Origin: Lepidodermella squamata
Lineage: Eukaryota; Animalia; Gastrotricha
Direction of reading: 5' to 3'
Length of the DNA stretch: 64,000 bases
Assembly (NCBI GenBank): GCA_047495785.1
Contig: JBLDXI010000043.1
Span: 434,001 to 498,000 of the forward strand
The notes beneath the pieces are model-generated. The model was given only the letters and a program-made list of their open reading frames with translations, ran no database searches and was not told the DNA's origin. Both the position numbers and the translations under genes were made by a program. Every line of letters starts with the position of its first letter. Positions within the stretch are counted from its first letter, which is position 1. Below, in pieces: positions 12,390 to 46,598 of the stretch.

Positions 12390-12431
12390 TTAATCGTGTT
12401 GTTGCTTCACATGCAACATTCAATTTTTTAT

Positions 12432-15400: not shown

Positions 15401-16331
15401 GCATCGCTTAACGCATGTCGCAGTCTCAACTCGGGGCCTGGCCTGTCTTGCTTTGTCGGGAATTCGACTACGCTGTCAAACTGCTCCATTCCTGAGCAAG
15501 CACGTAAAAACCTCGCATTTTCTCCTAAATCCTAATAAAATTATTTTCTCATGCAGCGGTGAAAATTGAATCTCCGACGACTCGCTTTTTTCGCTGCGTC
15601 TACGCTCTGACCGGCGAATTCGTTGGCTGTCGCCGGAATAAGTGCCGAACGGGCGAAACCACTCTTAATTGGAAAGCTACTAGGAAAGCCTGCATTCGAG
15701 GCGTAAGTTTCAAGCGCAAAAATCTGAGCTATTGCCGTAATTACTAACCTGAGCTTAGGTAAATTTAAAACGCCAAAAATCGCCCTAAGGTTGGCTTCTA
15801 TTTTAGGGCAGGGTAATACATACAATTAGAGCTCAAGTATTACGATTGTCTTTACTGATCAGCTCATCCGATTCAGGTTGCAAAGCGTTGCTATACGGGA
15901 GATCAATTCCGTTGTGTCGCCAATAGCATGAAGTGCGACAAGCCCGGTGAAATTGAGGTGAGCTGTTTGATATGAAAGCTGCGCTATTCTGCTATTTTCC
16001 GACTTATAGAACAAAACAATTGGGCTATTCAAAACTTACCGCTTCTTCACCCGCAGTTGGCTCGCTTGCCAACACGTCGACGGCATGGTACTGCACAGTC
16101 CTTAGGGCTCAAGTTGCTTTCATTTAAGAGTTTGCATTTTGTAGGAGTATTTCCGGTGTTTCAAAAAAGACTTCGTCGACTGTCGCCGCTACGAATGCCG
16201 CGCTGAAGAAGTGAGTTACTGCTTGCCTTTTGCCTTCATGTTCAATGTAACTTGGTGTTCATTGTTTTCTTCAGACTACTGTGGGTCCTTTTTGGACGCC
16301 GGAAAGTTGCTATGCCGATAACTGGGAATAG
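12432..16331 (+). CDS. Secreted catalytically dead astacin-like EGF-CUB-kringle protein (copy B)
   Basis: Same exon series as copy A (starts MPSSLVGFVFLLVVSMAG, ends GPFWTPESCYADNWE*). Motif exon from 13932 reads NNGVAYRFFFLLGFKSEILRSDYHDY. Third intron is expanded to about 0.94 kb. Confidence 0.8.
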
Positions 16332-17826
16332 CGGAGCTGCTATGACTGAGAAAACTGCATTAAAATAGAACTATCTTTCGTGATTCATTATCGCTTGATA
16401 TATAATCGTATGTATTTTCGACAGAGCAAGTTAACTTAATCTTATTTTCTGACATTCAATTTTGTGGTGCGTTTTGTGCTTATTTAAAAGAAAATGTTAT
16501 TTTATTTTCCGAATAAATCAGGATCGATTGAAACACTTTTTAAAACTTTAAACAGGAGGATTAAAATGGAGGAATGCTCATATGTTGGCAACATTTTTGG
16601 TAAGTACAAGAGTGCGATGAATTCAGAGAGGCGAACTCGCTGTTTTATATTGATGGTATCTAAGATTTCGGACGTGTCAGTCCGAAAATTCGACCCCGAG
16701 CTTAAATTATTCTCTAAAAGAGGGCCGAATTCCAAGATCAGTGTTTGATGTCCCATATTTCGTACGTCGCTTCCTCTTTGTAATACGCCGAAAGTTTCTA
16801 AAACAAATGACCCCCTGGTTTTTTGCATTTTTACACGTTTCAGATGGCCCTGATTCCGATTTTAAAGGAGTGGCAATTTACAAGGCTGCGAAGCCAACGA
16901 ACAACATCGGGATTTGACTTGGCTGACCTCGTTTGAAGTTTGGATAATTGCTGCTTGAGATGCGTAGCTTGCGACAGCCTTAAAATAAGTTGTTCCTGCT
17001 TTCGTTTCCGTGTCATGCAGTCGTAAATAATCGAGAGCCCTTGTTAAAATGGATCAGTCCTTGGCTCGGTGAACTCTCTGCTCGTTGCTCCATGGAGCCT
17101 TCGGTGACTGGCTCGGACTTGATGTAGTCTCGCGTTGAGAGAGCTAGAATTCAGGTCTTTTTCAAGTTCTCTAACTCTGAGCCGGATGACTGGATCCGAA
17201 GATAGCAGAACAGAAAAAATACAGTAAGGAAATTTGAGACAAATTTAATAAAGTACGGATGATAATTTCTTTGCCTCGAATTTTTTCAATAACTCCGTAA
17301 CCATGAGGAATTTTTTGGAGCGGGTTTCACCAGTCGATAGATCTAGTCTGTTATTTTCTTGGGATCTTCTTTTCTGGGGATAAAAAATAATGGCTAAAAA
17401 TGAAAAAAAATAAACCCTGTTACTCAAGATATGGCTTTAGACGGATACTACAGCGCTATTGCTTTTCAAGCCTCATCTAAATCGATTCTGCTATCCCATT
17501 CGTGAGAAAATCAACACAGCATCTCCCAAAAAAATTGATCTCGAGCTTTCAGAGGTTTTGAATTTTTTGCCTTCGACGTGGCTCAAATCACGCAATGTCC
17601 CTATCAAATCCTAATTTTCGCTGTCTACATCAACCCCAGCTGCCGTCCCTAATGAGATTTTCGAACGAATTTAACGGCGATTCGTTCATCGGTCTTGAAT
17701 TCAAGCGAACAAGAAATTTCGGCACGCAACCGCCTTTGCAGTCGTAAAAAATTCCCGCGATTTATTTCTCTGTAAAAAAGGGAATTTAACTATAGACCTA
17801 GAAAAAGCGATATTTTTTTCAAAAGG

Positions 17827-20800
17827 ATGCGAGCGGCAAACTTCGTCGCGATTCTCATCCTTGTTGCAGCTCTCCAAGGTAACTTTTCAGCCTTATTTAT
17901 TAATCATCTTGGTTGGAAAAAAATATTTAAAAAATGTTGCGAAATTCTTGAAATTCTCAAAATAATCCTCTTGTAAACTACTAGAAATCTGATATTTAAA
18001 ATGTTCGATGATTTTTCAACGAGTCAACGAATTTCGGCAGTTTGGTGATTGAAACAGAAAGAAATTATGCAAAATTGTTTCTACTATTTTCATAAAATTG
18101 TGAAAATTCATGGACAATTATTTGCTTTAAGGAATATTAATAGGGTCAGATACGTAATAAATCCTAATATTTCTCCAACCCCAGCTGACGCTTGATTCCT
18201 GTAAAGTGAAGCCTGACTCTATCAACCCTTGGTTTTCGATCTGACTCAACTTTCATGAACGGTAAAGGTAAATAGCCTCAAAGATGAGTTATTATTTCTG
18301 GCAACAGGTACCTTGGTGTAACTAGATTTCGTCAATTATGCATTCCTTCCCTAGCGCTGATATTTTGGATTAATCCAGTGATCTGAGATCGAGGGTTAAG
18401 GATGGGTAGACGATCCTAATCGTCCTAAGTAATCCATTAGGATCCCTGGACGATTGGCAAGCTTAGCTTGGATCAAAGACTTCCATTTGAGATCTGTTTT
18501 CCAGGCCGAAACCTAAAAATCTAAGAAATCACCTAATCCTTACTCCCTATAAAGCTTACAGCTCTGAAGTTAGGAAAAGGCCATTTTGTGAAGTTCGAAT
18601 TTTTCATAATATTATTGTTAAACCAAAATAAATCTAAAAGTAAACGAAGCTCAACCTAACCCATCACTTCGCATCGAAATATAACGAAAATTCGATCAAA
18701 TTTACGAAAATTCAAGAAATTGTAACTGATGAATTGTTGAAGCATCTAATCTTACCTGATGTGTGTTTTCGATGATTTCAGAGCTGTCAACAGCGCAAGA
18801 CGGCAGCAAGCCGTTGTCGGCGAACCGGAACATCAAAAAGTGGGCGATCCGCGGCAAGCTGCTGTTCCTCGGCGCCATGCAGGACGACTGCCTGAAGGAC
18901 GGCACCGAGTGCCCGAACGGCTTCGGCCTCGAGCTGTGGATCTCCACCGGCGGCTCCACTGGCTACCTGGTCTCCAATGGTGGCCAGTCGTCGAAGACCA
19001 ACGGCTTCTACGTCCGTAAGCCTGTCAATGGCGAGTACGAAGTCGGCGTGGCGCTGCAGAAGAACTTGTGGCGGCAGTTTGTCTACCTGAAGGCGAACAA
19101 GACCGTGCACTTGGGCTTCACGTGGGACAAGGCCAGCGGCATGAAGATCTACGTCGATGGTCTCGTTGCCAAGCAACAACGCCAGTCAGAAGGGTGAGTA
19201 GCATTTTCTTAGCTATTTTCGCGACTCTAATCTCTCATCGCTTTTCCACTTATTACGCAACAGCGACAAATAATTTTTCCGATAATTGAGCTTGATCAAT
19301 TTCAAATGAAAATTCGAGAATCCTCGCTCGTAATGAAATATAAAATTGGACGGTACTTTTGGCCGCAGCAAATTTTCACTCTTTTCCGCAGCAAATTTCC
19401 ATTTATTCAATCATGGACGCCAGGTTACGTTTGATAAGAAGCTAATCACGACGCCAGTTGATAGCGGGGTTCGAGGGCTATCGATTGGCACTAATGTTGC
19501 CAAACGAACCCTTTTCAAGTTTCACCAATAGTGTGATTTGTGAGACAAAAGTATGATGACTTCGGACTTTCCATCATATCCCCAAATTAGTCAATCTTTT
19601 ATTAATGAGTTAGGGCTTTTTCGACAGCCCTAATCCTCCTCTATCAGAATAAGTGAGAATCCCAAGATTTGGAGAAAAATTGGAGATGCTGGAAAGAAAA
19701 TAAAGAAATTTGCTGCGGAAAAGAGTATGAATTTGCTGCGGGTTAAAGTATTTTTCAATATAAACGGGACAGTGCCACCGATCTTGCCTCGAAAGTTCCG
19801 CTGCCTAAATATTTGCCCCGCTAAAATGAATTAGGGTTCCAGCACAAAAAAGTTTCCGATTTTTGACAATTTCGGCATTTTCCCCCCGATATTGATGCCT
19901 CATAGATAGTTGCTAAGTTCTCAGACTGATTATATCACAAAAATCACGAATATTCGAAATCGATCGGACTTGGAACTCAAAGAGGCATGTTTTGAGGTAA
20001 TCTAGTGCTGAAGCGTCATAGCTACCAAATCCTAACTTCAGGACGAAGATTTAGCATACCGATGTATCGATGTAAGAGATACATGATCCATCCACTGGAT
20101 TTCTCATGATTCGGTTTATTTTGTTATTTCCCTCGCTTCTCATTAATTTCCTCATTTTAATCGCTGTGTCAATTTCCCGATTTTTCCGATTTTTAGGAAC
20201 CTATGTAACTTTAGTCCGCAAAAACCTGATGATGATACATGGGAATACCTGATGTATAGGCACATTTTCCGGCCCGCCGGTGTTTCCTCCGCGCGCGCGT
20301 TCCTATTGGTTGGCTCGTTTTACGCGTAAATACGCCTCGCTCGCATTTATTGCGCAACAAATAATTGCAGCCCTCCCTCGCGCGCGCGCGCAAGAAAATG
20401 TACAAGTCCGAAATTCAGGAGAATAACGGCGCGCTAGGGGTTGGATATGCGTGGTGGGTGGCATAAAAAGCGAAATTTTCGTATTTTCGCTTTTTTTCAT
20501 TGGTATTTCAAGTTTATTTTAAATTTGAACAGAATTTTTCCCTAAAATAGCCTAAAATAGCGCGCCTAAAATGGCTATTTCCGGTTTATTTTTTTTTAAT
20601 TTTATAATTTTTCATAAAAAAGCGTGTTCTTCGAAAAAAATACATCACATCCTTTCTCTTAAATCAATTTTTATATTCTTATGGCCGGTGTTTTTGGATA
20701 CGAAGAGATAAGTCATCAAATAAAGAGGTGTAGGCCGCCAAGATGCATTCAATTTTGTTGTCGTATTAACAATTCCAAACATCCTTTTCAAGGGTGAGCT

Positions 20801-22904
20801 TATATCTTTGTTGGAAAGCATGCAGCATGCTTGTCTCAGACTTAGCAAACTGACTTGGACTTAGCGCACGGGCGCTCAGGGCGCGTTCGAGTGCGCGCGC
20901 GCGGGGGTAGGCTATAATTATCTTGAAAAGTTGCGCAATAAGCCCCAACCAATAGGAGCGCGCGCGCGGAGGAAACACCGGCGGGCCGGAAAATGTGCGA
21001 TGTATAGAGCTCTTATCGAGGTTTGAGGCTTGTTTTACTTGAAAATTTCCAGCTAGATGAAAGTCGATGGGTAATTCTACTGTAGTTTTTGCATGATTTC
21101 ACAGAATTTCATCGCTACGTAGCAATGAATTGCCGACCCTGTCCATCCTTTGAGTTTTCAATCTTAGAGAATCTTCTTGATGATTTTCTCCTAACTTCCG
21201 TTCTGGAATGGGAACCTGCATATAATTCTCAAACTGGTTAACTGATTTCTCAAATTCCTGCAAATTTTGGGATTTTTCATATTATTTCATACATAATATC
21301 TAATTTGAAATTCGCAGAAACCTCAAGATTTTACTCGCCAAGTGTTCTATTTCAACTCGGTTTTAAACTTCAGCCTCTAGTGGACTTCTCATTTTCCTCA
21401 TGACTGTTTGAATTTTCCTTTCTCTATTTCTTTGAAGTATCGATATCGAAACTAATTTGATCTTTCGCAAATCACAAAGTTGAATAGTTCAGAAATTCCC
21501 TTTTTCGATAAACTTTCGAATTAATTCCGAGAATTGTTTCGCGAACCGACTGCAGCCTTATCCGCTGCATTCTAATTTGTCAACTTCTTCTTCAGACGTG
21601 ACTACTCGAGCGTTGGCGTTGATGCAACAGACTCCGTCAACTACCTGATCGCAAACGGCGACTCGACCCGCTTCCACGATCTATTCGACGACAACAACCA
21701 GCCGAAACCCGGCGCCGAGCTCTTCGAAGTCGTCAACATGACCTACTACTACACGAGCCAGGACAGCGTTGTCCGCGAAATGACCAAAGACATGGACGAC
21801 CGGCTGCTCGTCGCCTGCTACAACAACGTCCCAAGCCAGTACTCGCGAGCCCCCATCCAAATGCCAGCGCCATCCCCCAACAACAACGTAACCTACCTGT
21901 ATTACCTGTGCCGAAACGGCTGTGCTGGTTCGTCGAGTGCTGGAGCTCAGGTTTGGGTGCCGAAAGCTGCTGTAGTCGATAAAACCGGCAACTGCTTCTG
22001 CTCGCCAAGCCCGAGTGGAGCCACTGCCGCGAGCTGCCAAGACCCGGCCACACTACGAGCCCTGTGGACCACCGTCTCCCTCTCAGACCCGTCCTGGAAC
22101 CCAGTCCAGGAACCCGGCCTCCAGGTCATCAGCCCAAAACCAACATGGCGGGTTAATGTTTCGTCGGAAACTGGTAACTTCAGCGTGCCCCAAGCTGCTG
22201 TTTCGAACTCATCATCGAACGTGACTGTTAGTATGCAATTTCTGACTACGGCCAGCAATCCATTCAGCTACTCAGACTCGGCTTCTCAGGTTAAATCTGG
22301 CGTCGTGTCATACACCAACCCTGACGGAAGTCCAATGGCTGTCGACAACACTAGTGCCCGGATTGACATCAGACTGAAAGGAGCCGGCGAAAAGGGACCT
22401 CAGCCTGTGAACTACACAGTTTTCGCACCGATCGCTGACGTTCAAAAACTTCCAATCAACTACCATCGAATCGATCTAGCTGAGAATGACTCTTCGATCC
22501 ATATCGTCGTAAAGCCTATGGATGAAATCACTCAGTTCCAGGTCTACATTCGCAAGGCTGGTTTCCCGAACGAAACTCTATACAACTTCACGCAAGCGCT
22601 GCCGAATGACAACTTCACAAAGTCGCTGAAAGACCCGAAAGTTTCCGACGAGTTGCGCTGGAGTGTTTTCCCACCGCCCACTTTGACCAGGTACAACGGG
22701 TCTTACTACGTCGGTATCAAAATCATCGGAGCTAAGATTGAGCTGCCGTATGTTGCCCATATCTACACCTACAACATGCGGATGTTCACTTCGGGCTGCC
22801 GTTCCTGGGACGAACAAAACGAAACTTGGGATGCCCACCGGTGCCAGGTCGGTCCTATGACCACTGTCTACGAAACCCAGTGCCTTTGTACATTTCCTTG
22901 GTAA
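17827..22904 (+). CDS. Truncated, internally deleted polycystin-1-like paralog (about 590 aa, no transmembrane part)
   Basis: Exons 17827-17878, 18782-19193, 21596-22904 splice in frame and are near-identical to the full gene. A junction near 22158 fuses PTWRVN to SSETG. Ends CQVGPMTTVYETQCLCTFPW*. Could be a pseudogene. Confidence 0.65.
20260..20998. mobile_element. Mutator/MULE-type non-autonomous element (MITE) in intron 2 of the truncated polycystin copy
   Basis: Perfect TIR gcacattttccggcccgccggtgtttcctccgcgcgcgcg at both ends. Exact 9-bp TSD gatgtatag at 20251-20259 and 20999-21007. Confidence 0.9.
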
Positions 22905-23863
22905 TGAATTTGTGCATTCTTCGAAAACTGTGTCATTTCGGTACGCAGCAAGATGTTTGTAACATTATTCCGTCCGATAATTTCGAGATGTTGGCTACAG
23001 AAATGAGTCAGCCAACAGCGCACCATGATAGAATGATGTTGTAATCTCATCCTAATTGTTTGAATTTATTACCAATTTTGTGTGTTCTGAATTTATGGGG
23101 GTGTGATGTTTTCAGTAGGTACATATTGTTCTGAGTTGTTCTAGGAACGCACTAAAATAACTAGTTGCTTTGCATGAGACGCTTCCAAAATTCGGCCGGC
23201 CGAATTTCGGAAGTGGCCGAAATTAGGGCGAGGTCCTCTGCTATTCGAACCAATCGAAAATTGATAACAGTTGAGCGAACATTCCTCTGGAATTTCTGTC
23301 CAGATGCAGACAATGTTGGTCACGAAAAAACAATCGGAGGACTGCCTTCAAACTTTAACTCACTCACTAATCTGCTCCTACGCAGGTGTGACGATGGACA
23401 CCTAGAATGAAATCGTGGTTTTTTCCAAATCATTACATTCTGGGCCAATTTTTCTTCTTCTAGCGACCCTTGCCCTTTGTCCTAAAAATTTTATTCGTCT
23501 TTGAATGTAATAACACCTTTTCGTGTCTGAATACAATGGTTTAGTAGCCCCTTTACGTGTTTTCTAACTCTGAGTGACGAATTCGCTCGCACGCGATTTG
23601 AATTTTTTGCAAAAATTCCATTCAAAAAAGGACCGTAGCGAAGTAGGATCCGGGAGCTGAGGTGTTTTCTAGCATGTTTCTAGCACCCAGCCGAAGAAAC
23701 CAAATGGTTTTTTTAGCTTTCCTCTGTTTGGAATCCCGGAGCTGGGGTACGCGACACCCCAGCACCCCTGTACTTCGCACCCTGGCTGATATCATTTGGA
23801 TATTAACTTCTAACTTGGAAGAGCAGTTTTGACCAACTACAGCCTTTGGCCATTATTTTTCAG

Positions 23864-24002
23864 CTGATCCGACCTGCAACACCACAAAGAAGTGCGAGAA
23901 CGGTGGCTTCCCAGATCCTGCTAAGAACTGCACCGTATGCCAGTGCCCGTTCGGATTCGGCGGTCCGAAGTGTGAAACCTTCGCGCCAGCTGTACCACGA
24001 GG
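23864..24002 (+). pseudogene. Orphan EGF exon fragment of the astacin-like gene
   Basis: ADPTCNTTKKCENGGFPDPAKNCTVCQCPFGFGGPKCETFAP, preceded by intron sequence shared with about 4385-4465. No upstream exons. Confidence 0.75.
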
Positions 24003-24198
24003 CACACTTACTTTTCGAAATCGCATTACAGTTAGAGCGTTTTTGAATTATTGGCTCCGTGAAGTCAGTAGTTTCAGATTCAGTAGTTTGAAATAGGTTT
24101 CGTGTACGGATTATACAATATGCGGGTTGATATCATTTGGATACTAACTTGGACTTGAAAAAAACGTTTTCACCAACCCCGGCCATTAATTTATTCAG

Positions 24199-24437
24199 CC
24201 GATCCGGCTTGTAACTCCACACAATGCGAGAACGGTGGCTTCCCAGATCCTACGAAGAACTGCACCGTGTGCCAGTGCCCGTTCGGATTTGGCGGCCCGC
24301 TGTGCGAAACTTTCGCGCCTGCTTTACCACCAGGCAGCTGTGGCGGCCCTGTTGTAGTCTCGCCCTGCAAAAAAACTATTATCGAATCTCCGGCTTATTG
24401 CAGCGCTGGCTGCAGTTGTTCATGGCTCGTTTCGACT
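24199..24437 (+). pseudogene. Second orphan EGF/CUB-start exon of the astacin-like gene
   Basis: Complete copy of exon 4466-4704 with both splice sites. The downstream CUB and kringle exons are absent. Confidence 0.75.
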
Positions 24438-24666
24438 GTTCGTTTATTTTTTTTCTAAATTCCCGAAGGAATGTGTAATATGTCTTTATGCACACGGTAA
24501 CATTTTATGATAAATGTTAATAACTTTAATAAACAGTAACACGTTCTACAGCTTGGTTAAACAACTTCTGTTGCTGCATTTACTAAATAGAGTCTATGTT
24601 GCTAATGCAGTTGTCTGCGCCGAAAAATCACGACAGGTTCCAATTTAGCAAGGAAACGACATAATA

Positions 24667-24782
24667 CAGGGCGTTCGCGTAATAATACTCTTCTAAAAAT
24701 AGCTTTGCTACTTTTTGCATGCATTTTAGCTTTTTTGTAGCTATTTTTAGCTCGCTCAGAGTATTATCACGCGAACGCCCTG
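24667..24782. mobile_element. Tc1/mariner-type MITE
   Basis: TIR cagggcgttcgcgt(a/g)ataatactct at both ends, flanked by TA on each side. Confidence 0.8.
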
Positions 24783-25352
24783 TACATTTGAAAAACCGAG
24801 CGCGCAATAATATATTCGCGCATTGTTTGGCTGTTAGTTAAAAGTGTTCCGCTGTGCTTCAAATATGTGCAATCTCAGAAGTGCATGATAGGTAAAATTT
24901 CGATTCAACAATAGAAACGTTGTATTAAAAAAAAACGGAAGAGGAATAGATTATCCATCCATCGCTTGGAGGGTTTTTTCAACACAGCAGAATTTATAAT
25001 GAGAGGTGTTCCGCTGTGCTTCCGCTGCTATTTTTTAGATGGCGGATGCTACCAGTGTTCTCTGGTATGCCTATTAGATATTTGAATTTAAAAGTTCTTC
25101 GGTTCAAATTTCGATGTTTCAAAAATGTTATTCATCTGAGCTGTTAGCTTTCGAGCGCTCGCTTTCATTATTTATTTTTTGTATCGCGAAATGTCATCAA
25201 ATTCGAAATATCTTATTTCGCTTTCGAAATTGGAAGTTTTTGAAGTCTGTAATAATTGTCAAACTGATCCATAAAGCATTAGTTTCTTTTATTCATTTTA
25301 CCTCCCGCATTTACTCACTCCATAGGCAGGCTTTAGACAAAATTTGAATAAA

Positions 25353-28300
25353 ATGTACACTTCAGCCTCAATAACGTTTGCTCTTCTAACGTTATGTTGC
25401 AGTGGAAATGCAGTCTTAGGATGGCGAAGCCGTTCACTTGCATACACAAAGGTTTCTGGAATTGAAGCGCTCTTCGAAGCAGTCTCATTGGACAATGTCG
25501 CAGAAGTAGACGCGATCATCGAAGAACACTTCCAAGGCATCCACCTGGCTGAAATTCGCAACGCTTCCGGATGGACCTTGCTCCACCAAATCGCCCTATC
25601 CGGCAGCAAAAAAGTCTTCGAACACTTCCTACCAGCGGCAAATCGACCGCAATCTCAAGGGGACCTGAGTGATACTGTGAAAGCGATAATTGAAGCTGTG
25701 GATGATCACAACCGTACGGCTATATTCTACGCCACTGCAAATATTCAGACGCTTCTTATTGACTACTTTGCGAACACCTCGCGACTCGATGCAGACGGCA
25801 TGCCGTTGAGCCATTTTTTGGCCAAGCAGAAAAACTACGACGCCCTGTCTAACCTCTCCAAGCTTCGAAACATCGACCGGGATGTTTTCGGAGGCAAAAG
25901 TCTGTCGCATTCAGCAGCTGAATGGGATTTCCCAGAATTTCTTCAGCTTCAGGGCTACTTCAATGCCTCTGCCATCGACAATCATGGCCGAACCCCGACG
26001 TGCTGGGCTGCCATCAACGGAAGCCTGAATTTTGCTCTAGAAATGGTGAAGCGTTCGCATCCAGTAATCGAAGGTCGGTGCTTGTATGGTAACGGAAGCA
26101 TCGGTTCGCCTCTTCACGCAACTGCTTTCTATCGATATGGGGCCTATGTTAAGATGCTACTAGCCCAGGGAGCCGAGGTTATGGCTAGGAGCGAGCTTAA
26201 TTCGGAAACCCCTCTGCATTCGTTGGTTGAGGGAAGCTGCGAAGAATGGAAGGATTCTGATTCGGAAATTGCCGCCATGTTGTACGACGCATCGCATGAC
26301 ATCATTGAAAGCCGTGATTCGCGAGGTCTGACGCCGTTTCTTCGTGCCGTGTCTTCATCGTGTCCTAAAACACCCCGGGCATTGTATACAAAATTCTCTG
26401 CCGATCATAGAGCTGTTGACAACAATTTCTATGGACTCTTCCATCTGGCTACTGAGACACTGGCTGCCGATCTGATCACGTTGCCTTTTGTCGACGTAAA
26501 CGCAAAAACAGAGAACACAGGCCTTACACCTCTGCATGTTGCAGTCATGCAACACAAAAGCATTAAATTCATCAGATTTCTGTTGAATCACGGGGCAGAA
26601 AGAAATGAAGTTGACAAATCGCTCAATTCAGCCGTTCATCACGCTGTAATAGAGAATAACTCCGAGGCACTGAACTTATTTCTCAAAGATACTAAAGTCG
26701 ACTTCAGATTTCGAAATTCACAAGGAATGACGCCATTTCTCCTCGCCATTGAGCTGGAGCGACTGAGCATGGCGGAACAGATTTTCGGTGTCCTTGGCCA
26801 GCCTTTGATCGCTGATTCGATGATTGACACCAACAACTCTGCGCTCCATCTAGCTGTTCAGAAGAATTGGACCAAACTGATGGATATGATGGTGAAATTC
26901 GCCCCAGACGATCTGCCGAACTCCGCTGGCGAAAATCCACTTCATACGGCTGTAAAGCTTGAAAGACTTGAAATCGTCCGATTGATTCTAGCGAAAAAGC
27001 CGGATTGGCTATCGGGTAAAGATATCTACGGTAGAACGCCTTTGCATATCTTGGCTTTGAACTGCGCTAATCAGGAAACACAGGCTATGGCTCACCTCAT
27101 GAGCGATCGATTCGTAGATTTTGAGAAAGAGCGAGATTTATTCGATGAAACGCCGTTAGAAACGGCAATCAAGCGGAATTGTGTGAACCTAGTAAAATTC
27201 ATGCTCGAGAATAGCTCGGAAGGTGTTTGTAAGGCGTTGAACACTCGCGAAGGCTACTCCCCGCTTCATGTTGCCAAGGTGCTGGCTCTCGATGTCATGG
27301 TGGAAGTGATGGTCGAATCGAACAAATGCAGCATGGATCAGATGGACGTTTCTAAACGAAAGGTCCGCGATGTCGGCGCGCTGGAAGAAGTTTCGATGCC
27401 AACTTTAAAAGAAGGTAAGTATTTATTTTAGGGATATCAGACCGATCGTAAATACCGAAGTATAAGTGAGGACCTAAAAAGAAGGGAGGGCCGATTTAGT
27501 AGAGAGGGCTGCGAGGCATTAGTTATAATTTAACAGAGGAACTAAATTGTAGAGAGTGTCTGATGCCATCACGCTTGACGCCCGCCACCTGGAAATGCGT
27601 GCGCGGGTAAAAATTAGCTGTTCACCTTAATCCTTCTAAATTTTGTTTACATACAGCTTAAGCGAAACTCGAAGGAAAGGTGGCCCGAGTACCTGGTGCA
27701 AGGCATCATCGATATGAAAATCCTCTCATTTGAAGGTGATTAGCGGCATTTTATGTGATGCCCAAGTATTGGGCTGAGAAAAAATAATAGGGTAGGCCTA
27801 AATAAAGGAATTGAAGAAAGGGGTTTTCGGACCGTTTGAAAAAAATAGTAGGGAGTCCTTCATATTCCGGTTAGAGATGTTTTTTTAGAGATCGCAAAAC
27901 TGCAATCAACGAAGAATGCAGGTAGGCTATCCTTATTCATAGCAACGTAAGTAATGACATGCAAGTTTGAAGCTCTAACAAACGAAGCAGAATGAATTTC
28001 CCATAACGAATACACTTTTGAACTCAGGGATCAAGTGACTTTGTACTTACACATTGTTTGAATTCTTTAACTCGATTATTAGAACTGGTAAAACTGCGGT
28101 CTGCTGATTCTGCAATATTCGAAGGTGAGAGTTTTCCAGCTGCTAAAATCAAACTCTGTCCATCCCATCTCACCCAAATAACGAAAAATGGTGCTCGCCC
28201 TCTCAAGCGCGCCCTCCTCAAACGTGTTTCACCAATCGTAGTACTTAGTACTAGTCCCGCTTGAGACTAGAATGTCATACGGGTTTCGTGTCTTGGACTC

Positions 28301-30176
28301 GTCAGTGAGGCCGTTCATCTAGTTTTATAAATTGTCCAGTTTTTTAACAGTTAGCCAGTAAAAGCTCTAGAAGCCCCAGCAGACCTTATTTTTCCATCTG
28401 CTGCTTCAGACTAGAAGCAATTTTTCAATATCGGTATCGACCTTTTTCATCAATTTGAATGTCGTTCATTAGAACTGGCAAAACTGCAGTCTGCCAATTC
28501 TGCAATGTCAGAAGGTTGGAGTTTTTCCAACTGCTATAATTCAGCTAATCTTTTTATATTCATCTTTAGAACTGATAAAGCTCAGATCCGCTGTTGATGC
28601 GTTAAATACAAGACGTAAGCCCGCCTTTCATGATACTAGACATCTTAGACGAAACGAATAATGTCATCATTTTCAGCTTTTTGCGAGCAGGGATGCATGA
28701 ATGGAGGCACCTGCTGGGCACCCAATAAATGCAAGTGTACAAAAGACTGGTACGGGTCAAACTGCGGAATACCGGTAATTTTTTGAGCTTGTTTTCTACC
28801 CTGTAAACTTGCGCATCGTCGATATTTCTTGTTGAACTGATCGAACTTCAAACTTGTTGGCAAAAATATTACTAGGGTAAGGTAATCTGAACCTAAACTG
28901 CATACCCACTCAATTTGTGTCCTATTGGCCTTAGACTTTGTGGATTTATAAAAATGAAGCATGCTAAACAAGTCGGAACCTATTAAAAATTCAGACAGCG
29001 AAATCAAAATAAAATGGCTGAAAGTAATGAGGTATAATAGCCATTGCTTAACTCCTAAATCTAACGCCGAATGCAGGCGAAAGCGAATCCTGCTGTGATT
29101 TTTCTTACACTACCTAATTTCATGATGCCGAACCCGAATATGGCCACAGAATAAGCCATCTATTCAGCCCCGCTAACTACACAGTCACCAGCACATGCTC
29201 GCTCCGCTCGCATGGTAATGATTGATTGGTAATAATCGATTGATCAGAATTAGTAATCCGGGATTGGTAATCCTCCGAGTCGCTATATAGGGAGACGGGA
29301 GGATTAGTAGTAATTAGTAATCTAGGATTGTTAATCTGTGATTGTTAATCCAGGATTAATAATGCGACCAAATATCACGACTTTCTGTACGGCAAATAAG
29401 CCAAAATATGAGCCAGAAGAACCTCATGGTTATGGAATGACAAGCTTTAAAAATTTTTTATGCAGATTTAGGTAACCTTACCCTATTTTTTCGTTGATAT
29501 AGACGAAATCTTTCAAATATTCATAAATTCTGCCGATGAATCTTTGTAAAATAATGTTAATGCTCGATCCTGACGAACTAAAAGTGAGTTGTAATATTTC
29601 GCACAGGTTCGAACGCTTTATGTGCAATTGTGGACTGCGTGTCTGAGAGCTGACTTGTCGGGAGTGAAGCGACTTGTGGCGGAGATCGACGCGGCCACTG
29701 GCGGCAACTTCGACCCTAACTGGCGAGATCCTAAGCGATACAGCTTTTGCACGTGGCATGTAAAGAACGGCACGCTGCTTCATCACTTGACAGCGTGTGG
29801 TGGGCAACCTGACCAGCGGCTAGCAATAGCTCAGCTGTTTTTGGACCGCGGCGCTGATGTAAATGCTGCAGAGGATCACGATAACTACAAGGCTGTGATA
29901 ATGACCGCGTATCATGGTAACGTCGAACTTGTACGGCTGCTGTTGGACCGCAACGCAGACATCGAGGCCAAGAATAGCAATGGCTTGACGGCGTTGAACC
30001 TTGCGGCCTTAAGTGGCCAGGTGGAAGTTGTGCGGCTGCTGCTCGACAGAGGTGCAAACACACAAGTAGAAGATAAATGGGGATATGCAGCACTCGATAA
30101 CGCAATTTCTAAAGGCCATGCTGCCGTGGTCGATTTACTGCGATTACGAGGAGCAAGATGTGCGAAGTCTTGTTGA
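25353..30176 (+). CDS. Secreted ankyrin-repeat / coiled-coil / EGF / ankyrin-repeat protein, copy C, intact (about 963 aa, 7 exons)
   Basis: Exons 25353-27414, 27889-27921, 28083-28124, 28473-28514, 28570-28614, 28677-28774, 29607-30176 total 2892 nt in one frame. Signal peptide MYTSASITFALLTLCCSGNAVLG. Many TPLH-type ankyrin repeats (GWTLLH, GSPLH, ETPLH, GLTPLH, GRTPLH). EGF CEQGCMNGGTCWAPNKCKCTKDWYGSNC. Terminal ankyrin module with LLDRGADVNA-type motifs. Confidence 0.85.
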
Positions 30177-30922
30177 AAAACGACTCAACTTAAAGACAGT
30201 AACGGTGGGTCAGACAGTCAGTTGTGCGCTGCATGTATTAATCTATCTATGCATCTGCTTCGAATCATCACCCTTGACATAGACTTTTTCCAAATTAAAA
30301 AGATGGGGATTGAAGTATGAGAGAAGATGAGAGAAAGCTCACATAAGATGATTTTTCAGTTTTATTTACAGTTCTTGATTATTAACAGGCTCCGATTGTA
30401 ATGAAATAGAAGATAAATTTTCCCTTCCCATTCGTGAGGAAATCGACACATCAGCTGTCGAAAACATTGATCTCGAGCTTTCAGGGGGTTTGATTTTTTC
30501 CCTTCGACGAGGCTAAAATCACGCAATGTCCCTATCAAATCCCAATTTTCGCTGTCTACATCAACCCCAGCTTGGAGTCCCTAATGAGATTTTCGAACGA
30601 ATTTAACGGCGATTCGTTCATCGCTCTTGAATTCCACCGAACGAGAAAGTTCAGCACGCAACCGCCTTCGCAGTCGTAAAAAATTAAGACTGCCATGGTT
30701 GGAGTGGTTAATAATTAACGCAGTGCTTACCTCATCAGCCCGGTTGCCGTGGCCGGGGACGCCGCTTGGGATTGCGAGAACGCTCGATCGCGTGATGTCG
30801 GCTCTGCGCGTCTGCTTCCTCGCCAGGTGACCGAGAAAATTCGGCCATTCCCGCGATTTATTTCTCTGTAAAAAGGGAATTTAACTATAGACCTAGAAAA
30901 AGCGATATTTTTTTCAAAAAGG

Positions 30923-33900
30923 ATGCGAGCGGCAAACTACGTCGCGATTCTCATCCTTGTTGCAGCTCTACAAGGTGAATTTTAAGCCATATTTATATAC
31001 ATTCTTCTTGCAAAAATATTTGAAAATATGGATGAATTCTCAAAATTCTCACAATAACCATTTTGCAAACTTCTGGAAAATAAGGTGATATGTGAAAACG
31101 TCGACGATTTTTCCGAAGTCAAGGAAAACAGAATTTGAAACCCTTTGAAATCAGCCTATTTAAGGGCAGTTTTCCAGAATAGAAACCACCTTCTAAAAAA
31201 ATTTAAGAAATTCTTCAAAAATATTCATAACGCCTATAAATTATATTTTCGATATCGGCTATGCAGGAGAGATTCGAAGGAAACTCGAAAATCCTCATTT
31301 AGGGAAAATCTCTTGCTGCTGTAACTTCGAATTATAGTCGTAAAATCATCTCAAGCAGCCTTATTTTGCCCTTAAAGCAGAACTGTACAAAGATTTGATT
31401 TGATTTTCGGCTAAAAATCAATCAATTTCACATTTCGAATTTTGATATAAAATCACAAAAATCGTCAATAAATCGCAATAGGCTGGCAGTAAGACTGGCT
31501 AAACCTGAATCACCTAATTATTGCTTCTTATAAAGCTTTCTTTGTTGGCAAACGGTTTTTTGTGAAGTTAGAATTGTTCTCAATTTTATGTTTAAATTAA
31601 AATCGATCTAAATTAAACGAAGATCGGCCTAAATCAATCACTTCGCATCGAAATTGGGAAAATTAGGATAAAAACCCAACAAAATCGAATGAACACAAAA
31701 ATTCAAGAAATTATAACTAATAAATGATTGAAGACTCTAACCTTAATGTGTGTGTTTCTATCGCTGCTTTCAGAGTTGTCAACAGCGCAAGACGGCAGCA
31801 AGCCGCTGTCGGCGAACCGGAACATTAAAAAGTGGGCCATCCGCGGCAAGCTGCTCTTTCTGGGCGCCATGCAGGACGACTGCCTGAAGGACGGCACCGA
31901 GTGCCCGAACGGCTTCGGCCTCGAGCTGTGGATCTCCACCGGCGGCTCTACGGGCTACCTGGTCTCGAACGGCGGCCAGTCGTCGAAGACGAACGGCTTC
32001 TACGTCCGCAAGCCCGTCAATGGCGAGTATGAAGTTGGCGTGGCGCTGCAGAAGAACCTGTGGCGGCAGTTTGTCTACCTGAAGGCGAACAAGACCGTGC
32101 ACTTGGGCTTCACGTGGGACAAGGCCAGCGGCATGAAGATCTACGTCGATGGCCTGGTGGCCGGGCAACAGCGCCAGTCAGAAGGGTGAGTAGAACTTTT
32201 CATAGTTCTTTTCACGATTTAGATATGTTTCTCACTCTTCCACTCATTACGCAACAACAACAAATTATTTTTCCGGTAATTGCGTTTCAGCAATTTCGAG
32301 AAAATTCGAGAATCCTCACTCATAGTGAAATATAAACGGGACAGTGCCACCAATCTTGCCTCGAAAGTTTCGCTGCCTAAATATTTGCACCACCAAAATG
32401 AATTACGGTTCCAGCACAAAATTTGAGCGTTTCGGCGATGAATTTTTCCGATTTTTTGACAAATTCGGCGTTTTCCACTCGATTTTGATGGCCCATGAAC
32501 GTGGGATTTCCTATTGTGGTCACCTCGTAGCGTCCGATAGATAGTTGAAATCACGAAACATCACGGACTTGGAACTCGAAGAGGCATAATTTGAGGTCTC
32601 TAATGCTGATCTATAGTGCTGAAGTCTCATAACTATCTAGCTCTTGAATCCATTTTCGAGGTTTTAAGGCTTGCTTTACTTGAAAATTCCCAGCTAGATG
32701 AAAGTCGATGGATAATTCTTCTGTAGTTTTCCACAGAATTTCCCCACTACACAACACTGATTTGCCGATCCTGCAAAGTCCATCTTGAGATTTGAATCTC
32801 AGAGAATCTTGTTGATGATTTTCTCCTAACTTTCGTTCCCCTTTTTCGCCAAAGCTTAATCTTTACTTTGAAGTGATTCATGGGTGTATAGGAAAAATGG
32901 GCAACTTTAGATACAACCATTTTCTCGAATTTCTGGAATCGGAACCTATAAATAATTCCCAAACTGATTAAATGATTTCTCAAATTCCTGCAAATTTTGG
33001 GATTTTTCACATTTCTATCTGGTTCTTGCTATCTTAGCCCAGCCTTTATCGGGACATTCATTCGTCGGGTTATAACAGTCGCCAATTCCCAATTCCTAAT
33101 TCGAAATTCGCAGAAACCTCAAGATTTCTTAACATTTGACTCGCCAATTTTTCTATTTCAATTCACCAAAAATGAGCTGGTTGTAAACTTCAGCTTCTAG
33201 TGGACTTCTCATTTTCCTCATAATTTTTAGAATTTTCTTTTCTTACTTCTATGAAATATCGCTACTAACTTGATCTTTCGCAAATCACAAAGATGAATAG
33301 TTCAGAAATTCCCTCATTTTCGATAAACTTTCGAATTCATTCCGAGACTGGTTCCGCGAACCGACTGCAGCCTTATCCGCAATATTTTTCAATGGAAATT
33401 CCAACTTTCAAATATTTTGTCATTTGACATTTCAATATTTAGTCTTTTTCTTTCATTAGACGTGACTACTCGAGCGTTGGCGTCGATGCAACAGACTCTG
33501 TCAACTACCTGATCGCAAACGGCGACTCCAGCCGCTTCCACGATCTGTTCGACGACAACAACCAGCCGAAACCCGGCGCCGAGCTCTTCGAAGTCGTCAA
33601 CATGACCTACTACTACACGAGCCAGGACACCGTTGTCCGCGAAATGACAAAGGACATGGACGACCGGCTGCTTGTCGCCTGCTACAACAACGTCCCAAGC
33701 CAGTACTCACGCGCCCCCATCCAAATGCCAGCGCCATCCCCTAACAACAACGTAACCTACCTGTATTACCTGTGCCGAAACGGCTGTGCTGGCTCGTCGA
33801 GCGCTGGAGCCCAGGTTTGGGTGCCGAAAGCTGCTGTAGTCGACAAAACCGGCAACTGCTTCTGCTCGTCGAGCCCGAGTGGAGCCACGGCCGCGAGCTG

Positions 33901-36900
33901 CCAAGACCCGGCCACGCTGCGAGCCCTGTGGACCACCATCTCCCTCTCAGACCCGTCCTGGAACCCGGTCTTCACCCTCCAGGTCATCAACCCGAAACCA
34001 ACATGGCGGGTCAATGACGAAATTACCCTGATGGTCACTGGCATCAGCGATGATGTCATGTACCAGTTCGATTTCGGCGATGGTTCCATGTTCCTACCTG
34101 GTAAGGACTCGACAGCAACTTACGCCTATAAAAAGCCCGGAACCTACAACCTAAAACTCACTATGGAGTACGGCCATCGAGCTTACAACAACGAATCGCT
34201 GATTACCTTCAACGTTATCGCAAACCATGTCGGCAAACCACCGGCTGATTTCATAATTCTAAGCTCCACCCTGCAACCAGCGAACGGGTCGATGGCGGTC
34301 AAGGTTCAGTTATCGGGCGAGGATGACTTCAAATGCCGGTATAACGTAAACCCAACTGGTTTGAACGAACGGATCCGCGAAAAGGGCGGCGCGGACCCGA
34401 GCAACTACCAATTCGTTGCGCCTCAGGAGATGACGAGAATCGATCGGGAGCTCGTTGTCTACAACTTAGGTCCAGGCGCCTACGACCTAGTCGCTACCTG
34501 CAGTAATAAGTACGGAAATATGACTAAGGCCAGGCAGTTCGTTATCCCGTATAGCAAGGAACTTGCTACTACCCAACAAAAGACGGTAGATTCGTACGAA
34601 ATCCCAGCTTTGAATATGGCCAGCCTTACCAGCCCGGCTACAGCCCAGATTCGAACTTCGAAGAAATCTATCCCTGTCACAGTAAGCGGGACTACTGGAA
34701 TCAAACTCGGCCAGTTAGACACACTGCTCGAAGTTGGGAATAACACGATTGACGTTACCGTTAATGGCAAACCATTCTGCGTTGTCTACATCTTCGTTTT
34801 CCGACCTGCTGGTAACATGAGACTATCAACCTCGGCGCCTTTTGTCCCATACCCTAAGGGCTACCCGATCAACTTCAACCTATTCGTTGAGACCGGCGAT
34901 GCGATCCAGGGAACCCTGGATTTCGGCGATGGCTCTCCGAAAGAGACGATCCCACGCTTCACAACCGCCTGCCCTTGCAATTACTCCGGGACCCACATCT
35001 ACGGAATGGTTGGCGATTTTGTTATCAACGCTGCTCTCAGCTCAGCAATTGGCGGCGAACCATTCGCAGTTCAATCGCCTTCATTCAAGGTCGATTCTGC
35101 CGCGATTGGCGATGCTAAGGTCGACATGACGCCGGCTGACGGAAAGGTCTATGCTGGTGAACAAGTCGCCTTCGAAGTTTCGGTAACATCCGGATTCTCC
35201 CTCGGCGGTACCATCGACTACGCGGATGGCAGTGTCGAGCCGTTCCGCTTCGATGCGCTGACCTGCCCTTGCACGAAACGCTTCCTCCGCAAGTACAATG
35301 TCCCGAATTCCGAGAATACGATCGTTGTCCAGATTCGAGGCAACTACTCTGAGGCTTCGAAAACTATCCGATCCACGGTCCTAGTCCTCACTGTCCCGGT
35401 TGGTAACGCTAAGTTGGAAATCGCTGATCCACCGAACATGCGATACCTCCCCGGTGATGCTGTTACCTTCAAACTATCAGTCGATTCCGGCGAAAATGTT
35501 GCTGGCAGCATCAATTTCGGTGATGGAACTCCGAATCAAGTCGTTACCTTCGCCCAACCCGTCTGCCCTTGCTCGAAGACCTTTCGTCGCAACTACACCG
35601 ATGTTTCGAACTACACAATCTCGGCGAATGTGACCAACATCGCTGGAACAGCTCGAGTCCCGTCTTTGATCATCCCTTTCACCCAGCAACCGGTTACTGA
35701 CGGGTTCTTGCGGCCAGTTACCGGCTCGAACGCGCATATGTTGCTCGGGGACGAGTTGCAGCTCGAATTCGGTGCTAACGACGGCGAGCAAGTTTCGCTG
35801 GCCGTTGATTTCGGAGATGGAACTTCGATCTTCAAGCAAGATCTCTACAACACGGTCAGACGCCGTTGCCCATGCACCGGGACCGTTGAAAAGCATGTCT
35901 ACGACAAGCCCGGCTTCTACATGATCACTGCGACCTTCAGAAACAAAATCTCGTTCAAGGTCGTTCAAATCCCGGTGAGTGTCAACTTCAAAATCGCGTC
36001 AGTTACCGTGAAAGCCTCTACAGACCGAGTTGTGACCATCAACGCTGATCCTGTGACCTTCACTGTTGAAGTCAATGCCGAGGGTGACCAAACAACCCAA
36101 CCTGGACCAATTTTTGTCGACTGTAATATGGGCGATTATAAGGAAACCAAATTCATCCAGAATCTCAACCCTGAAAAAGACATTGTCACGTTTTCGTACG
36201 TTTTCCCGCGTTTCAACGCGTTCACCATCACCTGCACTGCGAGGAATAACATTTCGACTGCGGTAACTGATGGTTCGACGATTGTGAGAGTTGGCACGCC
36301 TATGAGTCGACTTTTTGTCTATGCACTACGAACCCGAGTCGCGGTTAATGAGGTAATTCCATTCACGATCGCCCTACTCCAAGGAACAGGCGCGATTTTC
36401 GATATCAGCTTTGTGACTCAGGACGAAATGGAGACTACAGCGAAATCTATGTCCGTCTCCCAGGATGTTTTTGGTAGCCCTGAGGTGACTAATCTCAAGA
36501 ACGTGAGTCTCCCAACTCCTGGGACTTACCTGATCAACGTCGTCGCGAAGAACGCGTTTGGATCCTTGACCGTTCGGACCTGCCAGGCTGTCACCGTTGT
36601 AACCCCTGCTGCCCCTGGCCCAATGCAAGGCGAGGAGTCTTGCTCCAACTTGGCGCTGAAATTACCAACTGATGCCCCGAAGATCTTCCAATCCTACGGC
36701 GCGAATATTTCTTTCGGACTTCAGACCGACTGCCGGCGAGGTATGGTCGTCACAGCCCAGATTTTCCGCAAATCAAGTGGTGCGGAAAATGCGGTATTGG
36801 TACCGACCAGTGCCCAGCTATGCTCGACATCCATGGTCCAGCCATACCCGGTTAATGACACTAATATCTACACGAACATCCCACCAGGCCGCATTGGAAT

Positions 36901-46584: not shown

Positions 46585-46598
46585 GCTTTTAATTGATA

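Follow-up and report, generated by a model that had tools for sequence, protein, structure and literature searches.

Positions 25326 to about 30320 of the window analysed here, a 64,000-nucleotide stretch of Lepidodermella squamata DNA (contig JBLDXI010000043.1, 434,001 to 498,000), hold a single expressed gene of six exons on the + strand, hereafter gene A, and a paralog, copy B, lies on the same strand. The features are as follows, in window coordinates.

7951-11252, + strand: copy B, a paralog whose exon 1 is 90% identical at the nucleotide level.
7951-10010, 10061-10093, 10217-10258, 10314-10358, 10423-10520 and 10680-11252, + strand: exons of copy B, with ag/gt sites.
25326-25352, + strand: 5' untranslated stretch, opening at the start of X1 record 1.
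25353-27414, + strand: exon 1 of gene A, 2062 nt, ending in phase 1 (Pfam, AlphaFold2, RNA coverage; donor between 27414 and 27415).
25353-25412, + strand: start codon and predicted signal peptide, aa 1-20, MYTSASITFALLTLCCSGNA/VLG (Kyte-Doolittle, paralogs, pLDDT).
27889-27921, + strand: candidate 33-nt heptad micro-exon with ag/gt sites, in phase and homologous to copy B 10061-10093.
28083-28124, + strand: micro-exon, 42 nt, phase 1-1, encoding ELVKLRSADSAIFE, two heptads (RNA joints 27412>28081 and 28122>28471, GT..AG).
28473-28514, + strand: micro-exon, 42 nt, phase 1-1, encoding ELAKLQSANSAMSE (RNA contig).
28570-28614, + strand: micro-exon, 45 nt, phase 1-1, encoding ELIKLRSAVDALNTR (RNA contig).
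28677-28774, + strand: EGF exon, 98 nt, phase 1-0, encoding six cysteines, CEQGCMNGGTCWAPNKCKCTKDWYGSNC (Pfam, RNA joints).
29607-30176, + strand: last coding exon, phase 0 (Ank_2 match; RNA to 30189; stop codon 30174-30176).
30177-30320, + strand: 3' UTR (RNA depth zero before 30348; ATTAAA at 30294-30299), with the poly(A) site probably near 30320.

An earlier, sequence-only reading of this stretch had joined two ankyrin open reading frames, of 695 aa (25344-27431) and 184 aa (29622-30176), into one gene. The public run X1 contains precisely such a join, a spliced contig of 2033 nt (record 4) that runs from exon 1 through the last exon in the blocks 26194-27412, 28083-28124, 28473-28514, 28570-28614, 28677-28773 and 29606-30189, bridging five introns with GT..AG at every joint. 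X1 depth is zero in the introns and flanks of gene A, so we take X1 to be RNA; the RNA support consists of contigs of this single run, whose type is surmised from depth. Exon-only depth tracks exon length (13.1 for 42 nt, 27.7 for 87 nt, and 30.2 for 98 nt). Record 1 spans 25326-26048, no single X1 contig covers the full 25326-30189, and none was seen over 26154-26193. A processed retrocopy was rejected as the origin of the spliced contig, as the joint between exon 1 and the micro-exon has no intronless match in the genome.

The transcript also corrects the model first predicted, which had seven exons, four of them micro-exons, and 963 aa. In the RNA contig, exon 1 and the last exon are connected by micro-exons of 42, 42, and 45 nt and by the 98-nt EGF exon. 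Because the 33-nt exon 27703-27735 (+) is absent from this contig, the product has 952 aa encoded in six exons, over which the 952-codon frame is uninterrupted. This 33-nt exon would keep the frame, but we rejected it as a constitutive exon; it has a weak acceptor and no counterpart in copy B, where the first intron measures 50 nt. A 79-nt version of it (27657-27735) introduces stops. Compared with the genome, the allele seen in the transcript carries 11 differences in its last exon, which alter 7 residues, and none over 1219 nt of exon 1. At its 5' end the RNA starts at 25326, immediately 3' of an acceptor-like 'catag' (25321-25325), so that an upstream non-coding exon or a spliced leader is likely to precede this position. 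The element '(c)atag' is conserved 23-27 nt 5' of the ATG in gene A, copy B, and the paralogous loci L013 and L014, in phases that differ, and L014 has an in-frame TGA, from which the sequence upstream of the ATG at 25353 reads as untranslated and this ATG as the predicted start codon.

Exon 1 encodes the predicted signal peptide, an uninterrupted solenoid of ankyrin repeats over aa ~35-655 (head 1), and a linker. The 695-aa frame matches Pfam Ank_2 (E 1.6e-43, 147.6 bits, cut-off 27.3), and when exon 1 is cut into five sub-pieces all five match ankyrin models. In the AlphaFold2 model (pLDDT 77) the array forms one solenoid of about 17-18 helix pairs, the first at about residue 35, whose best Foldseek matches are the 24-repeat domains of AnkB and AnkR, with latrotoxin ankyrin parts at ranks 12, 13, 19, and 28.

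Between this array and the EGF exon, the three micro-exons encode a heptad region, in which the exon at 28473-28514 is a duplicate of that at 28083-28124 and is missing from copy B, and the 45-nt exon has homologs of 39-45 nt in L013, L014, and L016. In the best register the a positions read LDLNLV and the d positions LILMLL, alternate a positions being Asp or Asn, and the 3.5-residue periodicity is weakly significant (Fourier, against shuffles, P 0.05-0.12). The candidate 33-nt exon at 27889-27921 is skipped by the main contig, with an X1 depth of 0.33 in its bin, and is unused or rarely used.

As previously read, the 98-nt exon codes for an EGF-like module with six cysteines, and it is included in the RNA contig. 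Its profile scores are 20.2 bits for PF00008 (cut-off 21.5) and 24.6 bits, E 2.5e-5, for PF23301 (cut-off 37.5). The spacing C-x3-C-x5-C-x5-C-x-C-x8-C is invariant in gene A, copy B, L004, L013, L014, and L016, the motifs NGGxC and CxCxxxWxGxxC occur in the EGF exons of six genes, and we take the spacing to fit the PROSITE EGF_1 pattern, C-x-C-x5-G-x2-C.

The last exon, whose 184-aa frame matches Ank_2 (E 2.8e-36, 124.4 bits), encodes a 189-aa cassette (head 2), in which an N-cap specific to the family is followed by two internal repeats and by a C-cap whose last residues are ...RCAKSC. Its AlphaFold2 model (pLDDT 77) has a DARPin-like fold, and the best Foldseek matches are DARPins. The family to which this cassette belongs counts more than 200 matches across the 121-Mb genome at E <= 1e-10. 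Members start as a phase-0 exon at the N-cap (V/I)R..Y.QLW...LVAEID..TGG.FDPNWR and share a Cys pair, an N-x-S/T-LLH sequon, repeats of the form ...RLLLDR.A, and a C-cap LLRSRGA...SC followed by a stop, all of which gene A shows in its last exon, as do 20 further members. Among 21 cassettes, 19 have the Cys pair, both cysteines being lost jointly in the close paralogs L009 and L011, and 17 retain the sequon ahead of LLH, its middle residue varying. Over 77 family repeats, entropy peaks at positions 2, 3, 4, 6, 11, 14, 15, and 17, on a nearly invariant framework; we take these positions to be the target-binding face randomised in DARPin libraries, the positions which Binz and colleagues reportedly randomised in 2003. 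For gene A against copy B, exon 1 has a dN/dS of 0.21 and the cassette repeats one of 0.95, a contrast that comes from this one pair, of which copy B is frameshifted; head 1 appears to evolve under purifying selection.

Several features point to the secretory pathway. The N-terminus gives the top Kyte-Doolittle window of the whole protein, AlphaFold2 pLDDT is below 50 over residues 1-32, and six of six paralogs begin with Met and a 10-12 residue hydrophobic core, followed by a small-residue cleavage motif such as GNA/V. The signal-peptide-like N-terminus that had been noticed from the letters is thus present throughout these paralogs and looks cleavable, with a predicted n-region that has no basic residue and a cleavage site placed by the -3/-1 rule. 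The absence of a transmembrane segment also holds, since no 19-residue window outside the signal peptide exceeds 1.6 on the Kyte-Doolittle scale; the sole other high window, at 636-654, scores 1.45 and corresponds to a pair of ankyrin helices in the AlphaFold2 model. The last EGF cysteine is four residues from the C-terminal ankyrin module, and this spacing, together with the lack of any other spanning segment, would place all parts of the protein on one side of the membrane. The protein contains 12 N-x-S/T sequons where 6.6 are expected (P 0.02), those at 70, 120, 141, 247, and 435 being retained in most paralogs, and all eight mature cysteines of exon 1 are retained in paralogs wherever the region exists; the mature chain has 19 cysteines, an odd number. 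The even-numbered conserved cysteines, the co-loss of the Cys pair, and the conserved sequons are consistent with a secretory protein. Taken together, the RNA join, the start codon, the N-termini, the topology, the EGF-ankyrin spacing, and the cysteines and sequons support a wholly extracellular or lumenal protein with two ankyrin modules and no membrane span, as the sequence-only reading had proposed. The data show the structure of the gene, the lack of a membrane span, and the membership in the cassette family; from the sequence we infer secretion, glycosylation, disulfide formation, and oligomerisation of the 952-aa protein.

We consider it probable that gene A encodes a 952-aa soluble secretory-pathway glycoprotein, made of an ankyrin superhelix, an oligomerising stalk, an EGF module, and a variable ankyrin head, which acts as a multivalent extracellular adaptor or binder. 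The signal peptide (aa 1-20) would be cleaved, and the mature chain would open with the conserved superhelix of about 620 residues, followed by a 44-residue amphipathic heptad stalk from the three duplicated micro-exons, probably a coiled coil that would make the protein oligomeric. One EGF module would come next, in a nearly linker-free fusion to the short DARPin-like cassette, a member of the lineage-specific cassette family. In this arrangement the variable head 2 would recognise a variable ligand, and the conserved head 1 would hold a constant partner or the matrix. The purifying selection on head 1 and the binding-face variation of head 2 make a multivalent extracellular adaptor or binder the most likely mode; we infer an oligomeric extracellular binding protein, and its binding function is our conjecture.

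Alternatively, the protein might be a secreted structural or adhesive one, whose superhelix serves as an elastic spring or scaffold in a matrix, mucus, glue, or secretory organelle, cross-linked via the stalk and free cysteines, and whose cassette variation reflects neutral drift in a young duplicate. The array does look like those of AnkR/AnkB and NOMPC, which are spring-like, the chain has an odd number of cysteines with the terminal Cys kept across the family, the stalk and EGF layout recalls oligomeric matrix proteins, and the cassette dN/dS is about 1, not clearly above. Nevertheless, a near-invariant framework with hypervariability confined to the binding face in 77 repeats is a signature of selection on binding and not of drift, and the purifying selection on head 1 also counts against this alternative, which we consider rather unlikely.

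An intracellular protein, in which the N-terminal stretch is not a signal peptide and the six-Cys module is a cytosolic Cys-rich linker, would agree with the established, overwhelmingly cytosolic location of ankyrin repeats and with an EGF match marginally under the Pfam cut-off. This is improbable given that the six cysteines are invariant and the two EGF motifs recur in six genes, that the hydrophobic N-terminus persists in paralogs of only about 50% identity, and that sequons are kept despite their varying middle residue and the Cys pair is lost as a pair.

The other copies bear on whether gene A is functional at all. In copy B the layout described by the sequence-only reading is found in part: it has three micro-exons (33, 42, and 45 nt) as well as the EGF exon of 98 nt and the last exon, all with ag/gt sites, whereas the second 42-nt exon is missing and exon 1 is frameshifted by a 7-nt insertion, CGCATCG, at 8877-8883. 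The order of signal peptide, ankyrin array, heptads, EGF, and cassette occurs at gene A, copy B, L013, L014, and L016 on three contigs (five loci or more in the genome), where the number of heptad micro-exons ranges from one to three and the EGF exon is always 98 nt long; at the paralog L015, EGF-ankyrin exons were not found within 4 kb downstream. This architecture is not unique, being one variant of a large secreted-ankyrin family in the same genome. The frameshift of copy B, the differing number of micro-exons, and L015 would all suit a gene that is transcribed but has no function, left over from exon shuffling in a cluster that duplicates fast, and heading to the state of copy B. We give this alternative little credit, as the reading frame is intact over six exons, dN/dS in exon 1 is low, the splice sites are all canonical and used, and the architecture is retained in paralogs of about 50-79% identity.

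Few protein-binding modules are as common as ankyrin repeats, which textbooks place inside the cell; their extracellular use is known mainly from engineered DARPins and spider latrotoxins. The latrotoxins of widow spider venom resemble gene A in having long animal ankyrin arrays, in acting outside the producing cell, and in their weak fold matches, and differ from it by a large N-terminal helical pore-forming region and by the lack of an EGF module, a classical signal peptide, and a second ankyrin head. That gene A encodes a latrotoxin-like secreted toxin, whose ankyrin arrays oligomerise and form a pore, is very improbable despite this precedent, because its helix pairs begin at about residue 35, some 15 residues after the signal peptide, which leaves no room for the pore-forming wing and body domains, because a protein search with exon 1 found no specific latrotoxin similarity beyond generic ankyrin repeats, and because latrotoxins have no EGF module. 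The ankyrin effectors of bacteria, poxviruses, and bracoviruses are also exported from their producer, but they act in the cytosol of the target cell and have no eukaryotic signal peptide, EGF module, disulfides, or glycosylation sites. Like gene A, Notch has EGF-like modules in the same polypeptide as an ankyrin domain; there, a transmembrane helix separates the EGF modules from the cytosolic ankyrin domain, whereas in gene A they are four residues apart with no span. Gene A further differs in having a single EGF module and an additional ankyrin array N-terminal to it, and Pfam gives only ankyrin and this one EGF module, with no LNR, NOD, RAM, or tandem EGF found.

The unfamiliarity of the architecture, claimed from the sequence, agrees with our literature search on secreted or extracellular ankyrin proteins, which returned only work on effectors of bacteria or oomycetes, on latrotoxin, and on the engineering of DARPins; a preprint about HGT chimeras names ankyrin merely as a filter. 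Exon 1, searched against 5.8 billion proteins, gave only generic ankyrin proteins at 30% identity or less, and the best two (P0001 and P0003) read as generic proteins of ankyrin repeats alone, which lack an EGF module and do not match the N-terminus of gene A. For the cassette, the N-cap from a family member of 588 aa gave no match in a word-indexed protein search, and an exhaustive phmmer comparison of the 90-aa N-cap with 1.84 billion representatives gave 305 matches, all confined to residues about 54-90, the generic half-repeat. The proteins P0167 and P0245, whose N-cap matches reach further, are unrelated ankyrin proteins; no cap homologs outside the genome were found in these searches.

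The cassette shares with DARPins the cap-repeat-repeat-cap organisation, consensus-like repeats, and coinciding variable positions, and differs from these synthetic, cysteine-free proteins by its own N-cap (VAEID..TGG.FDPNWR), Cys pair, sequons, and C-terminal Cys. As a functional analogy only, the VLRs of jawless fish are also extracellular repeat binders with an invariant framework, a hypervariable concave face, and Cys-containing caps; they are LRR proteins assembled somatically, whereas the diversity here is germline-encoded in hundreds of ankyrin cassettes, and an immune role is analogy only. Going beyond the adaptor or binder reading, we tentatively suggest, as a possibility that we would not call likely, that gene A is an adaptor-type member of a germline extracellular recognition repertoire of 'natural DARPins', in which hundreds of hypervariable cassettes are exon-shuffled behind EGF and other modules and exported, the stalk giving multivalency and the 17-18-repeat array coupling a constant partner.

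The RNA shows an animal gene with two ankyrin modules, a predicted signal peptide, and an EGF module in one chain with no membrane span, and the conserved cysteines and sequons lie on the ankyrin modules as if these were adapted to the oxidising secretory pathway. Ankyrin repeats, normally a module of the cell interior, should here work outside the cell. If secretion is true, ankyrin binders that work outside the cell, stabilised by disulfides and glycosylated, arose independently in nature, the hypervariable cassettes are a candidate new kind of recognition repertoire, and they could serve as natural templates for secretable ankyrin scaffolds. If the repertoire reading also holds, an animal would have a set of binders comparable to LRR-based VLRs or Ig-based receptors, made from a scaffold regarded as restricted to the cytosol.

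A short heptad region directly N-terminal to an EGF module is also found in the secreted thrombospondin/COMP and tenascin, and this placement suggests oligomerisation of the arms in gene A. In contrast to these proteins, the arms of gene A are ankyrin arrays and its coiled coil is weakly supported, and Pfam gives no matches to TSP type-3 repeats, the C-terminal domain, FN3, or the fibrinogen globe. Gene A is, in addition, a clean case of micro-exon duplication setting the length of a stalk.

The two ankyrin ORFs recovered by the ORF listing, of 695 aa (25344-27431) and 184 aa (29622-30176), both match ankyrin repeats in Pfam (E 1.6e-43 and 2.8e-36, respectively) and belong to a single expressed gene, gene A, as a previous sequence-only reading had claimed. 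The RNA evidence consists of assembled contigs of X1 (2015), one of two public runs that contain the stretch; X1 behaves as RNA, its depth being zero in introns and flanks. In bins holding only small exons, depth is proportional to exon length, with 42, 87, and 98 nt giving 13.1, 27.7, and 30.2, respectively. X1 contigs mapping onto the gene include the following.

Record 1: 25326-26048, depth similar to that of record 4
Record 4: 26194-27412, 28083-28124, 28473-28514, 28570-28614, 28677-28773, 29606-30189, 2033 nt, depth 59.5

All five joints of record 4 are GT..AG, and the introns of the window genes are likewise GT..AG, with lengths of 50-830 nt. A retrocopy was ruled out as the origin of record 4, since a sequence search of the assembly (121 Mb, 151 contigs) found the first joint, between exon 1 and the following micro-exon, nowhere in intronless form. 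Record 4 is therefore a spliced transcript and, because it links both ankyrin ORFs, these form one gene.

The proposed seven-exon, 963-aa model was right in the frame in which its exons join, but the RNA contig skips the first micro-exon, 27703-27735, which is thus rejected as a regular exon. Also skipped is a better candidate, 27889-27921, the homolog of the 33-nt exon of copy B, a paralog at 7951-11252. Since both skipped exons are multiples of three, the frame is held and the main product has 952 aa. The low X1 depth in the bins of these exons (1.27 and 0.33, respectively) leaves room for rare isoforms or pre-mRNA containing either. Within the last intron, the DNA run X2 piles up at 29200-29590 to a depth of about 1600-fold, compared with about 100 outside it, and shows numerous loose ends. 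The piled-up stretch is rich in 'taatc'/'gattggtaat' motifs, and the pile-up points to a high-copy short repeat inside the intron, perhaps a mobile element.

At the 5' end, the RNA contig starts at 25326, directly after 'catag'. An acceptor-like '(c)atag' (25321-25326 in gene A) lies behind a pyrimidine-rich run, upstream of the ATG by 27 nt in A, 26 nt in B, and 23 and 24 nt in the paralogs L013 and L014, respectively. Because the phase between motif and ATG differs among paralogs, and L014 has an in-frame TGA upstream of its ATG, we assign the upstream stretch to the 5' UTR and the start codon to the ATG at 25353. The motif suggests that the 5' UTR is spliced to a non-coding upstream exon or to a spliced leader; a common spliced leader would also account for the contig ending exactly at this motif.

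Searches and folding analyses, done on separate parts of the spliced product, gave the following anatomy.

Residues 1-20: predicted signal peptide, MYTSASITFALLTLCCSGNA, exceeding every other window of the protein in hydrophobicity, -3 and -1 being small residues
Residues ~35-655: one continuous ankyrin solenoid, model pLDDT 77
Residues 688-731: heptad stalk of 14-residue repeats, encoded by three micro-exons, ELVKLRSADSAIFE, ELAKLQSANSAMSE, and ELIKLRSAVDALNTR
Residues 732-763: EGF-like module, 98-nt stretch 28677-28774, six cysteines, domain match slightly below the PF00008 cut-off
Residues 764-952: ankyrin cassette, cap-repeat-repeat-cap, with DARPins as best structural matches

The structure model is disordered up to residue 32. 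The solenoid best matches the 24-repeat domains of AnkB/AnkR, followed by NOMPC, TRPA1, and the ankyrin parts of latrotoxins. In the stalk, the best heptad register places LDLNLV at a and LILMLL at d, and the 3.5-residue periodicity is only weakly significant; a coiled coil is no more than plausible.

We conjecture that the gene A product is a multivalent extracellular binder. The stalk would oligomerise the chain, the conserved long array would hold a constant partner or the matrix, and the variable DARPin-like head would bind a variable ligand. A structural or adhesive protein is an unlikely alternative to such a binder. The likeness to coiled-coil/EGF matrix proteins is confined to the stalk-EGF junction. 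Notch has a membrane span and LNR/RAM, all lacking here, which sets the product apart by the defining features of that protein. The previous reading did not recognise the order signal peptide, ankyrin, EGF, ankyrin, and the literature searched yielded no animal secreted ankyrin-EGF protein. In protein database searches, exon 1 showed only generic ankyrin similarity outside this genome (at most 30% identity), and the cassette N-cap, its first, family-specific part, had no match outside it.

From its sequence, the product is best read as a soluble glycoprotein, either secreted or lumenal. The hydrophobic N-terminus noted earlier is kept, with Met and a hydrophobic core starting six of six paralogs, the most distant of which is only ~50% identical. 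The predicted lack of a transmembrane segment also holds: outside the signal peptide, no 19-residue Kyte-Doolittle window of the 952-aa product reaches 1.6, the next-highest (636-654, 1.45) being an ankyrin helix pair in the structure model. EGF modules require the oxidising secretory pathway, and only four residues separate the last EGF cysteine from the first cassette helix, so module and cassette share a compartment. The product carries 12 N-x-S/T sequons versus 6.6 expected (P 0.02). Six exon-1 paralogs retain all eight mature exon-1 cysteines (4+4), except where the region itself is missing, and mostly retain the sequons at 70, 120, 141, 247, and 435. The N-cap cysteine pair is present in 19 of 21 family cassettes; both cysteines are missing in L009 and L011, probably through a single event, as these are close paralogs. 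Of the 21 cassettes, 17 retain the sequon that precedes LLH while its middle residue varies (G, C, S, A, F), which suggests that selection acts on the sequon as such. Beside these features, a cytosolic protein seems very improbable, and we infer that the product is secreted, glycosylated, disulfide-bonded, and oligomeric.

Complete family cassettes (L001-L037) always end in Cys (...KSC or ...SSC, followed by the stop). Cassettes outside the EGF subfamily have an odd number of cysteines, which may indicate an intermolecular disulfide or a bond to the preceding module.

A genome search with the cassette gives more than 200 hits at E <= 1e-10. Those examined share a phase-0 acceptor, the start motif (V/I)R..Y.QLW...LVAEID..TGG.FDPNWR, and the end ...LLRSRGA...SC-stop, with 2 to ~15 consensus repeats in between. 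About seven paralogs of exon 1 exist. Five loci on three contigs (A, B, L013, L014, and L016) carry, after exon 1, 1-3 heptad micro-exons, then the 98-nt EGF exon, which is invariant, and lastly a cassette; the architecture is thus recurrent, and stalk length varies with the number of micro-exons. The most complete exon-1 paralog, L015 (G000:C30:449400-456000), has a 720-aa ORF, 63% identical, with its donor site kept; no EGF or cassette exons were found within 4 kb downstream. PAN/apple-like Cys-rich ORFs follow its exon 1 (positions 4120-4700) and may be an alternative fusion partner of the long ankyrin array.

The A-B comparison gives dN/dS values of 0.21 for exon 1, 0.42 for the cassette N-cap, and 0.95 for the cassette repeats. 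Compared with the assembly, the X1 transcript has 11 differing sites in the last exon (29607-30176), which change 7 residues, and none in 1219 nt of exon 1; diversity within the species appears to lie mainly in the cassette, the variable head. In a set of 77 repeats from the family, the framework hardly varies (T7 A8 L9, A12 A13, G16, R22, L23-R27, A29), and entropy peaks at positions 2, 3, 4, 6, 11, 14, 15, and 17, the target-binding face randomised in DARPin libraries. Set beside this pattern, a functionless product of shuffling has little probability. A toxin is the least credible reading: latrotoxins are defined by an N-terminal pore domain, which the gene A product lacks.

At 25773-25793, an X1 contig shows five differences within 21 nt, with one residue change, N141D, that removes a sequon. 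As the differences do not match copy B, the cluster is not a simple conversion from B; it may represent an allele, or conversion from a paralog other than B.

Copy B, said to have the same layout, has it only partly: exon 1 is disrupted, and the other exons and splice sites look intact. Exon 1 of B is 90% identical to that of A with three in-frame indels, and its frame is split by a 7-nt insertion, CGCATCG (8877-8883), which looks like a tandem duplication. Copy B is either a recent pseudogene or affected by an assembly error. Gene A lies within a duplicated, rearranged block (3500-23000 versus 24000-42600), and the window (C43:434001-498000) also carries a myosin-II gene; its gene content as a whole is that of an animal. 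The first three features below come from the ORF list, the last two from ORF translations only.

4447-4815 and 24267-24458: putative astacin-like remnant, upstream of the ankyrin gene
18763-19197 and 31728-32189: ORF downstream of the ankyrin gene, hydrophobic over an N-terminal stretch
21738-22904 (truncated) and 33602-42617: large ORF, putative PKD/REJ-type polycystin
43600-55400, minus strand: two ORF groups, NEK-type kinase-like, with coiled-coil segments
52670-53194, minus strand: ORF resembling ankyrin repeats
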